Positions 20,501 to 32,500 of a stretch of 64,000 nt of DNA are shown in pieces (position 1 is the first letter of the stretch; every line of letters starts with the position of its first letter). The notes beneath the pieces are model-generated. The model ran no database searches. It saw only the letters and a list, made by a program, of their open reading frames with translations, and had not been told where the DNA came from. Position numbers and translations under genes: made by a program. The DNA comes from Tubulanus polymorphus (taxonomy: Eukaryota; Animalia; Nemertea), in the NCBI RefSeq assembly GCF_964204645.1, contig NC_134035.1, forward strand, positions 1,674,001 to 1,738,000. Reading direction: 5' to 3'.

Positions 20501-23500
20501 ATTTATAATCATCCTCTCTTCACATGTTTTGATGAAAACTCCCGGAGATTTTGAATTGACGGTGAACTAAAACATGAAGATTAGGCACTTTATTGTTATA
20601 CTTAGAAAGTGATCATCAAGACTTCACTGAACCGAGGTGAATTGTCTGGTAGTGGTTCAGGGTTACCGATTGATGCATGCATTTCATTATCTTGCATTGC
20701 AAAATGCTTAATTCGTCTTTGCACATAACTTCTTCTGATCCTGCAGGGCAGACTTTGATTTTGATTAGGAAAAAAAACGATGATAATTTTCAATGGATAA
20801 TTCTAATGAATGAGTTGGAAAGCTTTGTATCATTTAGCCTTTGATATTATTGTGATGGTGGTTGTTAATCATTTCAGGGTTTTCAAGTACTACGTTACTA
20901 AAGCTATTCATGATTGATATATATTTCAGGGTCGCGGGTTCAATACGGGCGTGATACTGTTAGATCTGAATAAAGCTCGCGAGGTCAACTGGATGCAGAT
21001 GTGGAAGCTGATCGCCGAACGCGAACTGATGACGATGTTGAGTACGTCGCTCGCCGATCAGGATATCTTCAACGCGGCACTCAAACAACATCCGTATCTC
21101 GTGCATCGTATGTCGTGTCAGTGGAACGTACAACTCAGTGATAATACTCGCAGCGAGTTGTGTTACAGCGAAGTCTCCGATTTAAAGGTAAACGTTAAAT
21201 CACAAGAATCTGTTCTAACAAACCTTACGTTTTGACAAATTTTTAACTCTGTGAAATCTGCTAGAATTTATTTGGACAAACCTTCCGTTTGCGGAGCTGC
21301 CAACTGTTCCTGATTTTCAGTATTTGTTACTCTTTAATGATGAGAAATTATGATTTGGTTTGTTTGATGCTTATAGAAATATGAAAGATGTTACTGAGGG
21401 TCTTACTGTTGATTACTGATTAATTTGAACAGAAATATGAAAGACGTTACTGAGGGTCTTACTGTTGATTACTGATTAATTTGAACAGAAATATAAAAGA
21501 TGTTACTGAGGGTCTTGCCCCCTTGATTAGTAATTAATTTAAAAAGGAAGGAAAATGAAAGGTTTTACAGAGGGTTTTACCCCCCTTGATAAGTGATTAA
21601 TTTGTACGGAAATATGAAAGATGTTACTGAGGGTCTTACTGTTGATTAATTTGAACATTTTCTTTCATATTTCAATGAAATGTTATTGAAAAAAATTCAA
21701 TTTGCTACTGATAATACATTTCAGAGGTTGGCAGCCATCTGTTTGCCAAATTCTCAACTCAGTGAAATATTTACTGAAATTTCTATCCACATTTCTCGGA
21801 ATTTGTAGATCATTCACTGGAATTCACCGAAGAAACGCAACGTCAAAAACAAACACATCGAATTTTTCCGTAATTTGTATTTGACGTTTTTGGAATACGA
21901 CGGTAATTTGCTGCGGCGTGAACTGTTCGGTTGTGGAGTTACGCAGAACACGGACGTTAAAGAACAGGTCAGTCGAAACAGCACGTTTTACATAGCAAAG
22001 TGAAAATATTGAATTCGCTTATTGAACCAATACGTGCTCCCTGGGTGGACCGAATGCCATAGAGATCCTACCACAGCATAGATCTCTGTTCAAATAAACT
22101 CAGTTTCTATATACAGTTCACTTCAGTTAACTTGGGTCCCGCTGGCTCCGGGCAGTCGTAGCAATGATGAGTTGTCATCGCAAGAATTCGACTAGAAAAT
22201 TTTTTAACGTTCTGTCGAGGACATGTGATAATCCATGGCAATCAGCTCGGAGGCTAGTACATAGTCTACTGTAGTTAACCAGCATTGCCAATCAGATATC
22301 ACATTTCATTTCTATTCATGAAATTGCCATAAAAAGTAAATGATTGTCATTTTCAATGAGCGTTGATTCCTTCGTATGATCCCTTCTGAATTTTTCTTGA
22401 AAAATCCCTACTCCAAGTAATTACAAAAAAACAGTCCAGAATATTAACCATACTCAGAAGTCGGATATTTGGTTTCATAGATGAATCTACAATTTGATTG
22501 GGTTGAGCAGTAATTGAAGAATATGACTGATTCTATCTGGGAGATTTAATAGATCCGTACTCCAAGTAATTACAAAAAAATAGTCCAGAATATAAACCGT
22601 ACTCGAAATGTTTTTGATTGTAGTTGAGTGCTTTGAACGAAGAGGACGAATGTTACGATTTCCGCCGCGAGAAAGTGCTCGTACATCGTACGCACTTGTA
22701 TTACATATCGTATGACTACGAGCCGCGTACGGACGACGTGACGCTCGTCACGCAGCTCAGCATGGATCGTCTGCAGATGATCGAATCGATCTGCGAACAC
22801 TGGGAAGGCCCGATCAGCGTCGCGTTGTATATGTCCGACGCCGAGGCGCAGCAGTTTCTGCGGTACGCGCAAGGATCGTTGATTCTGATGCAGCGACGCA
22901 ACGTCGGTTATCACATCGTTTACAAGGATGGAGTAAGTAGAACGATAATAGGTCGTCAAACTGGCCAGGGATGGATTGGACAAATCTGAGCTGACGTTGA
23001 ATGGTCTTTTTATTCAGTCTGGGTTTGTCCATTCTAAAATGGAACAGACCAATTTAGAACAGACTATTTGTTAGTGTGAACAATCGGTGCATTCTTGGAA
23101 TGGTCACCAAAAAGATTTAGAATGTTTTGAAAACATAGTGTGTTTGCAACTATAGGCATCATCAGGAATTTTTGGAGGCGTCTCAGATTTGTGCGGAAGT
23201 ACATGTTTGTGTACAACAGCATCGCTCACATCAACAAGGAATGTTGGTCAGAAACCCTTATTTGGTTTCATAGATGAATATGATACAAATTGCTTGGGTT
23301 TAAGCGGTTATTGTAGAATATGACTGATTCTATCTGGGAGATTTAAAGGTCCTGAGAAGGACCATTGATTTCCGGGAAATTCAACAGTTCAGAAGTCTCC
23401 ATCCATCGGATCTATCGCCAAACAGAACTGTCTAAGTTCATCCATCTCATCAGCTTTCTTCCTCGCATATTCATAATAGACGAATCTCATTCCTTCTAGA

Positions 23501-29500: not shown

Positions 29501-32500
29501 CCTTCTCAGGACCTTTAAATCTCCCAGATAGAATCAGTCATTTTCTACAATAACCACCAAACCCAAACAAATTGTATCAGATTTGTCTATGAAATCACTG
29601 TGACGCTCCTTGAAATCAATGGTTCTTCTTAGAATCCTTCAGATAGAAGAATAAGTTCGTATTCAAAATGAACTGATGCTAACTACTTGATGAACCCGAG
29701 CAATTTTCAGATTTCATTTTAACGACAATTGAATTTTTCGGGTATTATTTCTTTCAGTTGTTTTATCCGGTGAACTATCTGCGTAACGTCGCGTTGAAAC
29801 AGGTTCAAACTCCGTACGTGTTTCTACTGGACGTCGACTTTCTGCCGATGTTCAACATGTACAACTACGTGAGAAAAGCCGTTTCGATGATTAACATCGC
29901 GACAGAGAAAAAGGTATATATTTCTTCGTAGACAGGAATAGCAATGTCATTGAGAGAAACCCACAATATCAATTCAAACAGCTGTTATTGCATTTTTTTT
30001 TGTACATACCCTTCCACCCATCTTTGTATGACATTCATCAAGACTGGAAATAGTCTCAACTGATTACAAGCAATAAGTTAATAAATCAGTACCCATTAAT
30101 CTGTAACACCAGGGGCCAGTTGCATAGTCATGGCCTAGACTTAAGACCAGTCTAATACCAACTTAGTTCTATAGCCAATCTAACAACTTAAGACCAGTCT
30201 TAAGATTTAGGACCACTTTTGGTCTTAAGTCACGACCGTGTAACTGGCCCCTGGGGCAGATTCGAGGACTTGTTATGAAGGTTTTGTGACACATTTGACC
30301 GCATTTTTGTTAATTCATTGAAAAGGCATATTTGGAGGTGCATAAGCAATTAAGACGTCGCCTTTGAAATTTCGTGTATCGGTCGGATGCATTTTACAGC
30401 ATTTCTTAAAGTAGAAAACTTTTCCTCATTCTCTACTAATTGCACAAGAGAAGTTTACAAGATTGAATCAAATCAAGGGTAGTAAAAAAGTTAGGAGTTT
30501 ATTCAATTGTTTCTTTTGGGTCAATCGCAAAATTGTTACTTTATCAGAACTTGAAGAAAACTTCGATTTTAACGGAGATATTTTGAAGATTTTATTCTAC
30601 ATATTCTTTTTATCCATTTTCAAGGCTCTGGTTGTTCCTGCGTTCGAGACGCAACGTTACAAACTCGATTTTCCGAAGTCGAAAGCTGAACTGATTTCGA
30701 TGTTAGATATGGGTACTATAGTAACATTCAGGTATAGTGTAGTTACGTAATCTAGTGTATATATATATATATATATATCTTTATTTACGTGTCATCTCGA
30801 TAGACAAGCCAGCCTATAATAAGGCTTACAAGACACATTGACATTTACAAGTACAACAAACATGTGACAAACTGGTACAACTAATTCAGATTGGATCTAG
30901 TGTAAAATTATCGGTTTAAATCTGATGGATTGAATTTTTGGTGTAAATCGATTATTTTCTATCAATAGATATCACGTTTGGCCTAAAGGACACGCTCCGA
31001 CTAATTTTGCTAAATGGAGAACAGCGACTATGCCTTATTCGGTAAGACGAAATTTACACTTTTCTCAAAAAGATTACGCCATCCATAGATTCACTGTCGC
31101 TTCGGGGTTCCAGTTGTATAGCCGTGTATGTTGCATTATCCATAGATTCACTGTCGCTTCGGGGTTCCAGTTGTATAGCCGTGTATGTTGCATTATCCAT
31201 AGATTCACTGTCGCTTCGGGGTTCCAGTTGTATAGCCGTGTACGTGTCTTACTGAGCATGGCCATTGACCTGGAAAACCTGGAAAACTCAGGGAATCAGA
31301 AAAATCTAGGAAATAGATAATCAGGGAAAACTCCGCAAATTTGATAAATTTTGCAAGAAAACCTGGAAAACTCAGGGATTTGGATTATGTTATTGATCCC
31401 GTGTTTCTCAATCAATATACGTGATTCAATGAAAAATAAAGCGTAACATTTTTTAAACCAAGAAATTCCTTGGTGCTGGGAACTTTGTGATATTATATTG
31501 AAAAATCAGGAAAAACTGAGGGAATTTGTAGATTTGTGGAAAGCGGCCATACTGTATACCTTCTTTCTTAGGTTCAACTAGTGGTAACTATAAAAGGCCT
31601 TCTCGTATATTTTCCTTGCAGGTAGCTTGGCAACCGGATTTTGAACCATACGTAATCGTACCCAAAGACGTTCCGTTGTACGACCAAAGATTTGTCGGGT
31701 TCGGGTGGAACAAAGTGTCACATATAGTAGAACTCGATGCTAAAGGGTATGTAAGCGTATTGTGTTTATTGCTGTTAATGTGGGTATCAATTCACTGTCT
31801 GGACACTAATTAGCAGAACCCACAGTTGATGACTTGATAATTTATTCTAATCTGACAGTTTCAGAGTTTATCAAAACAACGTCCTCAAAAATGCTATTTT
31901 TTATTCTCTGATGATGGAGTTAAGATAAACTCTGAAAGAAATTGTCAGATCTGAATCAATTATTAAGTAATCAAGTAGTGTGGGTTTTCTCATTAACTCT
32001 GGTCAAGTCTGGGTACTTTCCATCAGATATGCACCATTTAAGCGTGGGTGGATGGACACTTGAATGTAGATAAAATGACCAATGTCCGGTGTATAAAATT
32101 TATTGGGAATGCCTTATGTGAAGCCTGAACAAGATGAGAAATTAGGGGAATAGTGATAAAGTATTAAATATCTGAGGTGTGCAGGGTCCGGACTGTTGAA
32201 TGAAACATACATATAAATGATCTTGATTACCTGTGGAGAAGCAGAATGGTTGAAAATGAAGTTTTAAAAGCTATAGAAAAAAGTTGTTTATTTCATAATT
32301 TCGAATATGAAATCCAGTAAATCATATTAAAAAGATATTACAAAGACTTCCATTTAAGTTTATAGATCAACTGTAGAACCAATTAAACGGCCTTGCGCTT
32401 GTCTCAAACACCTCAATTGAAATCGACGGTTTCTTATTTCATTTTCAGCTATGAATTCGTAGTCTTACCGAATGCATTTATCATTCATATGCCTCACGCT

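Follow-up and report, generated by a model that had tools for sequence, protein, structure and literature searches.

In a 64,000-nucleotide (nt) stretch of the genome of the nemertean Tubulanus polymorphus (contig NC_134035.1, positions 1,674,001 to 1,738,000; hereafter the window), four small intronless genes whose products do not look like histones are each followed by a stem-loop and a purine-rich element of the kind found at the 3' ends of histone genes. We consider it probable that these four open reading frames (ORFs) are real, selected copies of a spiralian gene family, a large part of which uses, in place of a poly(A) signal, a 3'-end signal of histone type, by way of the SLBP/U7 mechanism. 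Judged from the genomic sequence, the signal is very likely functional, and the view that a non-histone family took on the format of histone genes is strongly supported. We infer the consequences at the level of the RNA, namely SLBP binding, U7-dependent cleavage, the lack of a poly(A) tail and the timing of expression.

In the mechanism that we envisage, a large part of the family, including the four window copies, would present a stem-loop with a stem of 6 base pairs (bp) and a loop of 4 nt, followed 9-10 nt past the stem by a purine-rich histone downstream element (HDE). SLBP would bind the stem-loop, the U7 small nuclear ribonucleoprotein would pair with CCCAGATAGA in a duplex weaker than those on core histone genes, and CPSF73 would cleave 4-5 nt past the stem, so that the mRNA would end in the stem-loop without poly(A). 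Such an mRNA would share with histone mRNAs their coupling to DNA replication, their maternal storage, or both.

Histone-type 3' ends of four genes in the window

The 16-mer GGTCCTTCTCAGGACC (GGTCCT-TCTC-AGGACC) occurs exactly four times in the 64-kb window, where dinucleotide shuffles lead one to expect 0.01 occurrences, and each copy lies 25 nt past the stop codon of an intronless ORF of 95 or 96 amino acids (aa), at the coordinates reported in an initial annotation of this DNA. At all four sites the element forms a 6-bp stem with a UCUC loop (GGUCCU-UCUC-AGGACC) and fits the pattern GGYYYU-UYUN-ARRRCC. The sequence AAATCAAT stands directly 5' of each stem-loop and CAGATAGA stands 11 nt 3' of each, as had also been noticed earlier, and the HDE-like CCCAGATAGA begins 10 nt past the stem, with nine intervening bases.

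Gene copy 1, with a 95-aa coding sequence and stop codon at 23389..23676 on the minus strand and 98% identity to copy 2, is followed on the same strand by stem-loop 1 (23348..23363) and an HDE-like element (CCCAGATAGA, 23329..23338) that was read from the sequence and set against the histone consensus. Copy 2, also of 95 aa, occupies 24558..24845 on the plus strand, with its stem-loop at 24871..24886 and its HDE-like element at 24896..24905, in columns that are conserved in an alignment of family 3' untranslated regions (UTRs). The two 96-aa copies are copy 3 on the minus strand (28051..28341; stem-loop 28010..28025; HDE-like element 27991..28000) and copy 4 on the plus strand (29182..29472; stem-loop 29498..29513; HDE-like element 29523..29532), their downstream elements again being read from the sequence. 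All four coding regions come from the ORF list, and all four stem-loops are exact copies of the 16-mer.

That the 3' element is of histone type in its sequence is borne out by the species' own histone genes, whose stem-loop and HDE it matches. In the array on contig 10, the H3 genes have this very 16-mer with CCCAGAAAGAG after it, and the consensus of ten histone 3' ends reads AAAC-GGTCCT-TGTC-AGGACC-ACTTAAAA-TTCCCAGAAAGAGCCAGT. The window element CCCAGATAGA is identical to the species' histone HDE, CCCAGAAAGA, at nine of ten bases, the mismatch being the central U, and it begins 10 nt past the stem, compared with 11-12 nt for CCCAGAAAGA. We built a covariance model, R1, from ten histone 3' ends only (H3, H4, H2A, H2B, an H2A copy on contig 4 and five H1). 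Searched over the 64-kb window, it gave four matches at E<=1, all of them at the four sites and over the full model, with scores of 32.6-36.0 bits and E-values of 2e-8 to 2e-7 that are to be taken as rough; the matches span 23313-23371 (33.8 bits), 24863-24921 (32.6 bits), 27975-28033 (36.0 bits) and 29490-29548 (33.9 bits). The composite pattern of stem-loop plus HDE is rare in this genome, with 57 matches in 268 Mb, versus five for a reversed control. The histone array itself (G000:C10:8355987-8432055) has a unit of ~10.2 kb with H4, H3, H2B and H2A, and the stem-loops of its H4, H2A and H2B genes have a UAUC loop.

The remainder of the histone-like format proposed in the initial annotation, intronless, with a TATA box and in many copies, holds as well, in the form of inverted pairs here and of tandem arrays in Mytilus. 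TATATAA lies ~57 nt before the ATG in each window gene (24495..24501 on the plus strand for copy 2), and a promoter motif upstream of copy 2, AATTAGTGACA...GAGATGCCC (24411..24447, plus strand), is common to close paralogues and one metagenomic relative (it is also on L037, L039, L040 and L080). The pairs are divergent, as had been claimed, with inverted arms at 23297-23839/24395-24937 and 27939-28501/29022-29584 that are 97-98% complementary. Within each arm, of 543 or 563 nt, ~160 nt with the promoter and leader precede the ORF and ~95 nt follow it on its 3' side; each pair is an inverted duplicate of one gene.

Past copy 4 lies what looks like a relic of a second 3' end (29621..29649, plus strand), GGTTCT-TCTT-AGAATC and then CAGATAGAAG, in which both bases of one stem pair are altered and a second pair is a G-U wobble. 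It has no accompanying ORF and was not matched by R1 at E<=1. Between the two pairs, at 27314-27428, there is an inverted-repeat element resembling a miniature inverted-repeat transposable element, with a word depth of ~230,000 in a DNA-like public run where the background is 28, and it is a branching point for many contigs.

The protein family and the conservation of its 3' ends

By sequence and predicted structure, the window proteins are not histones, since they have neither a histone fold nor a basic composition. The claim of a non-histone product made in the initial annotation therefore stands: the protein has an isoelectric point of 5.2, with 15 lysines and arginines versus 17 aspartates and glutamates, and searches of Pfam gave no significant match and no match to histones. 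The AlphaFold (AF2) prediction for copy 2 consists of two long antiparallel helices, residues 3-43 and 47-88, at a mean confidence (pLDDT) of 91.6, a fold that suggests a small oligomerising coiled coil. A Foldseek search of the PDB returned only generic antiparallel coiled-coil hairpins with E-values of 0.18 or worse, and a profile search of PDB sequences likewise found generic coiled coils only. The inter-SH2 domain of PI3K p85 (2rd0_B) is alike in shape alone, with a Foldseek TM score of 0.84-0.86; no sequence relationship to it was found, and it is the basis of no functional inference. The ESM Atlas yielded generic coiled coils together with one mostly mollusc cluster, which is probably the same family as the window proteins.

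Within this genome there are 22 paralogous loci, with identities from 79% down to ~20%, none of them near the histone array on contig 10. Comparison of the window genes with closer paralogues and two metagenomic relatives gave ratios of nonsynonymous to synonymous substitution (dN/dS) of 0.06-0.24 at a dS of 0.7 to >2, and by this measure the window ORFs are under purifying selection. The family profile drew 1087 cluster representatives from public data. Named members come from Mytilus, Pinctada, Littorina and Brachionus, so that the family spans nemertean, bivalve, gastropod and rotifer, all spiralian; they are uncharacterised save for the Littorina protein, which bears the sole functional label, an automatic 'nucleolar transcription factor 1-B-like'. 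The selection on the ORFs, the profile matches and the named members together indicate a real, uncharacterised family across several spiralian phyla. Protein database searches turned up none of the short paralogues of this genome; one paralogue product, from contig 2, is in RefSeq as XP_074640406.1 (Tubulanus polymorphus). TATAAA-type boxes stand 5' of most family members, including those of molluscs.

A clean 6-bp/4-nt hairpin and an HDE-like word follow the stop codon at 12 of the 22 paralogous loci, and two further loci (L040, L041) have a degraded stem-loop and HDE that are still matched by R1. The stems vary in a paired manner, as GGTCCT/AGGACC, AGTCCT/AGGACT, AGCTCT/AGAGCT and GGTTCT/AGAACC. 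The initial annotation had asked whether distant homologues keep the stem-loop with covariation, and a number of relatives, Mytilus among them, do keep it with compensatory changes. In a metagenomic relative that is 74% identical, the stem-loop is followed by a perfect CCCAGAAAGAGCCAG, and in another, 70% identical, by CCCAGAGAGAA. GGCTCT-type stem-loops lie 12 nt past the stop on a Tara metagenome contig and 19 nt past the stop on a Logan contig (29.9 bits with the Rfam histone stem-loop family, RF00032), and a further assembly has four copies with GGCTCT-TATA-AGAGCC ~30 nt past each stop. Mytilus galloprovincialis has a canonical GGCTCT-TTTC-AGAGCC with CCAAAAAGAATC (31.9 bits with RF00032), Mytilus edulis has at least seven tandem copies ~1.6 kb apart, with an RF00032 match ~170-200 nt after each of six, and Pinctada has a degenerate version of the stem-loop.

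Across the family stem-loops, the G at the second position and the first and third loop bases, both U, are invariant. Two columns at the stop codon or immediately past it aside, the invariant columns in an alignment of seven 3' UTRs are confined to the stem-loop, the short spacer and the HDE; the sequence around the stem-loop and HDE cannot be aligned, and conservation ends shortly past the HDE. In this genome and its close relatives, conservation is as strong in the HDE as it is in the stem.

A few members depart from the single stem-loop. One paralogue, 31% identical (L052:1776-1949, in the region of G000:C10:10952825), has three tandem stem-loops with an HDE after the first only, and the paralogues of 79% identity (L037, L038) have two consecutive hairpins; no multiple stem-loops occur among the histone genes seen in this genome. 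The Mytilus edulis array (L097; GCA_905397895.1, CAJPWZ010000001.1:424370-433998) consists of at least seven intronless copies, and a 213-aa gene model there, P0161, is a spliced join of parts of separate tandem copies whose product includes a translation of the stem-loop region. One family gene has a U4 small nuclear RNA (snRNA) gene (L093:283-419, minus strand; 113.5 bits) ~380 nt upstream, and another has a U5 snRNA gene (L080:2142-2260, minus strand; 89.6 bits) ~380 nt downstream, on contigs of different samples.

Points against the reading and alternative explanations

Several observations weigh against the use of a histone-type signal by this family. The first concerns RF00032, the model that the initial annotation had proposed as a check: it is the family with the best E-value at all four sites, but the score of 22.2 bits (E 0.012 over 6.6 kb) falls below the gathering threshold of 34 bits, and at gathering thresholds Rfam gave no match in the whole window. 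The low score is due mainly to the 3' flank, which is UUUAA rather than ACCCA, a caveat that had been raised at the outset and that we uphold; the 5' flank, UCAAU, is atypical too, an A-rich one being usual. In the histone genes of this genome, the stem is preceded by (A)AAC or AUC and followed by AC(U/C)U or ACCC. The cut-off is nevertheless a poor guide in this genome, because its own array H3 and H2B stem-loops also score below it, at 27.8 and 31.7 bits.

About eight of the 22 paralogues have no stem-loop, and neither do the homologues from Littorina, Brachionus and L091, so that the protein can do without the signal. The covariation count, in which 96 of 96 stem cells in 16 family stem-loops are paired and both partners vary in three of the six pairs, owes its complete pairing in part to construction, because the stems were chosen for forming hairpins; the HDE, the location past the stop codon, the invariant G in second position and the invariant first and third loop U are independent of that choice. 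Finally, we compared public runs over 23200-29199 as contigs, which cannot show RNA ends; three were of unstated type and one was presumed to be RNA. One (X1) was flat at ~28x and DNA-like, two (X2, X3) covered the gene ~3x deeper than four copies account for, and X4 gave nothing, all at contig level. The ends of run contigs at 24918 coincide with the point at which the gene copies diverge.

As to the processing factors, the genome encodes an SLBP RNA-binding domain (C2:3287142-3287528; 46.5 and 35.7 bits), and U7 is present as candidates only and is not securely identified, a further point on the negative side. A genome search with RF00066, as the initial annotation had suggested, did produce a match, L031 (28 bits, sub-threshold), the only Rfam-like U7. 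This locus (L031:1501-1560; G000:C2:16587097-16587156) combines a good Sm site, AAUUUGUCU, with a 12-bp hairpin of fold z-score -4.35, but its 5' arm is AU-rich and has no complementarity to the histone HDE, so the expected pairing failed for it; L031 may be a diverged or dead copy of U7, or something else. Pattern searching gave a 35-nt candidate at C11:5308603-5308637 on the minus strand, in which GCCCTTTCTGGG is directly followed by ATTTGTCCCTAG; known from these 35 nt alone, it has a perfect anti-HDE and an Sm-like site. The HDEs of H4, H2A and H2B would form 12 base pairs with its arm, whereas the window HDE, with its central U, would form only 6+2, and the window genes would on this pairing depend more on SLBP. 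Two other loci were tried and set aside: L032 looks like a chance match, and L075, from an earlier pattern search, fits the HDE but has a weak hairpin and no Rfam match, and is a poorer candidate than the one on contig 11.

The window family is not alone in this genome in bearing such 3' ends. Of the histone-type 3' ends in the genome, the best are those of multicopy RING-type genes of 110-113 aa (L001-L004 and L104, for example at G000:C1:14510878-14510923 and C3:21230125; weak match to PF24921), which score 59-65 bits with R1 and 35.4 bits with Rfam and whose stems covary between members, as GGTCCT/AGGACC and AGTTCT/AGAACT. Cys-rich genes (L009, L010, L021) have a histone-type 3' end at ~46 bits with R1. 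Genes for DDE_Tnp_IS1595 (ISXO2-like) transposases, matched at 75 and 70 bits (L006 at G000:C3:15758071-15758117, L007, L082, L083), have a stem-loop and HDE 26-34 nt past the stop, with 46 bits in R1 and 34.6 bits in Rfam, above the cut-off; it would be unusual for a transposase gene to have a histone 3' end. Since all three groups bear the same 3' end, the window family is no oddity of one locus and, going by gene structure and 3' sequence, is part of a set of multicopy genes without introns that use it.

About 17 more sites with a stem-loop and HDE (G000:C3:21237154-21255669 and others) are closed by an A-U pair and have ACTTCAATTTCCAAGAAA as their spacer, and several of them have no ORF within 800 nt. 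Near one of these A-U-closed sites is a fragment with a YTDTDS motif, without a Pfam match, which we take to resemble a family-B DNA polymerase.

A rival possibility is that the window family, like the RING-type and IS1595-type genes, is the cargo of selfish multicopy DNA, mobile or amplifying, that exploits the histone 3' end, so that the signal serves the element and not the host. We give this a modest chance of being correct, and as to RNA processing it overlaps with the reading that we prefer. The copies are dispersed and intronless, and all four lie in a single intron of a plus-strand host gene, between one Glyco_transf_49 exon upstream (22624..22986, plus strand; profile positions 1-69) and another downstream (29758..29913, plus strand; profile positions 115-157); the RING-type genes, with their high R1 scores, and the IS1595-type genes, whose stem-loops reach the Rfam cut-off, point the same way. 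Set against this, the repeat unit is only 543-563 nt long and holds a promoter, one 95-aa ORF and a 3' end, with, judged by its ORF content and Pfam, no transposase or reverse transcriptase and no significant Pfam match, and the family is under purifying selection and common to several phyla.

There is also a small chance that the 3' end is dual or facultative, the stem-loop and HDE being used in some cells or stages while most transcripts read through to poly(A) sites. Certain histone genes have poly(A) signals in addition to a stem-loop and give polyadenylated replication-dependent or variant transcripts (PMC5100578, PMC3661734), which shows that downstream polyadenylation is compatible with a stem-loop/HDE. 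Copies 1 and 2 invite the comparison, as they have AATAAA/ATTAAA 228-347 nt downstream; the HDE is imperfect, the flanks are atypical and, with part of the family lacking a stem-loop, polyadenylated expression of the protein clearly works. These hexamers, however, lie outside the repeated unit, none is found within 400 nt downstream of copies 3 and 4, and none is common to the four copies or inside the conserved unit, in agreement with the absence of a conserved AATAAA recorded initially. Conservation, moreover, stops shortly after the HDE. The window genes differ from dual-signal histone genes in both respects, having a coding sequence unrelated to histones and no conserved poly(A) hexamer.

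It is improbable that the hairpin is kept for another role, as a protein site for translation or stability or as a transcription stop, without U7-dependent cleavage. The insecure identification of U7 would fit such a role, as would the Tara and Logan copies, whose clean stem-loops have no obvious purine-rich HDE, but in this genome and its close relatives the HDE is as conserved as the stem, and its histone-like spacing and words point to the U7 ruler mechanism. Least credible of all, to the point that we would be surprised to see it confirmed, is neutral hitch-hiking of a once-captured histone 3' flank or a chance palindrome: the four window copies are 95-99% identical and on their own amount to a single observation, but the chance expectation is 0.01, the element is kept with compensatory changes despite saturated synonymous sites and an unalignable flanking UTR, and it is present in mussel arrays.

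Relation to histone genes and significance

Passages of two papers (PMC4604434, PMC6303110) describe histone mRNAs as the sole cellular mRNAs known to end in a stem-loop, and our literature search for histone stem-loops on transposons or on genes other than histones gave no precedent. The window family resembles histone mRNA 3' ends in the type of stem and loop, in an HDE 9-10 nt past the stem and in the placement of the site soon after the stop of an intronless, TATA-containing, multicopy gene. It differs from them in its non-histone product, in the UCAAU and UUUAA flanks, in the one central mismatch of the HDE, in the sub-cut-off Rfam score and in having some members with two or three stem-loops. 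As histone genes do in their arrays and divergent pairs, the family occurs in multiple copies, here as head-to-head pairs and in Mytilus edulis as 1.6-kb tandem repeats; in a divergent histone pair, however, two different genes share a promoter, whereas the window pairs are inverted duplicates of one gene.

We lean, with some hesitation, towards a more general conclusion: that 3'-end formation by SLBP and U7 is not exclusive to histones in spiralians, and that an old family present in nemerteans and bivalves, together with the nemertean RING-type and IS1595-type genes, makes up a set of histone-like, non-polyadenylated mRNAs tied to replication or maternal storage. A non-histone family that keeps the signal in two phyla with compensatory changes would break the exclusivity of histones, and it would provide natural non-histone substrates for the study of SLBP/U7 specificity and of replication-coupled control of mRNA. 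If the conclusion is correct, transcriptomes and annotation based on poly(A) would for the most part fail to show such mRNAs. This carries a warning that poly(A)-selected RNA-seq, and annotation derived from it, would miss a class of genes, one mussel array having been annotated as a single spliced gene. The presence of the signal on a transposase gene raises the further possibility that mobile elements may time their expression to S phase.

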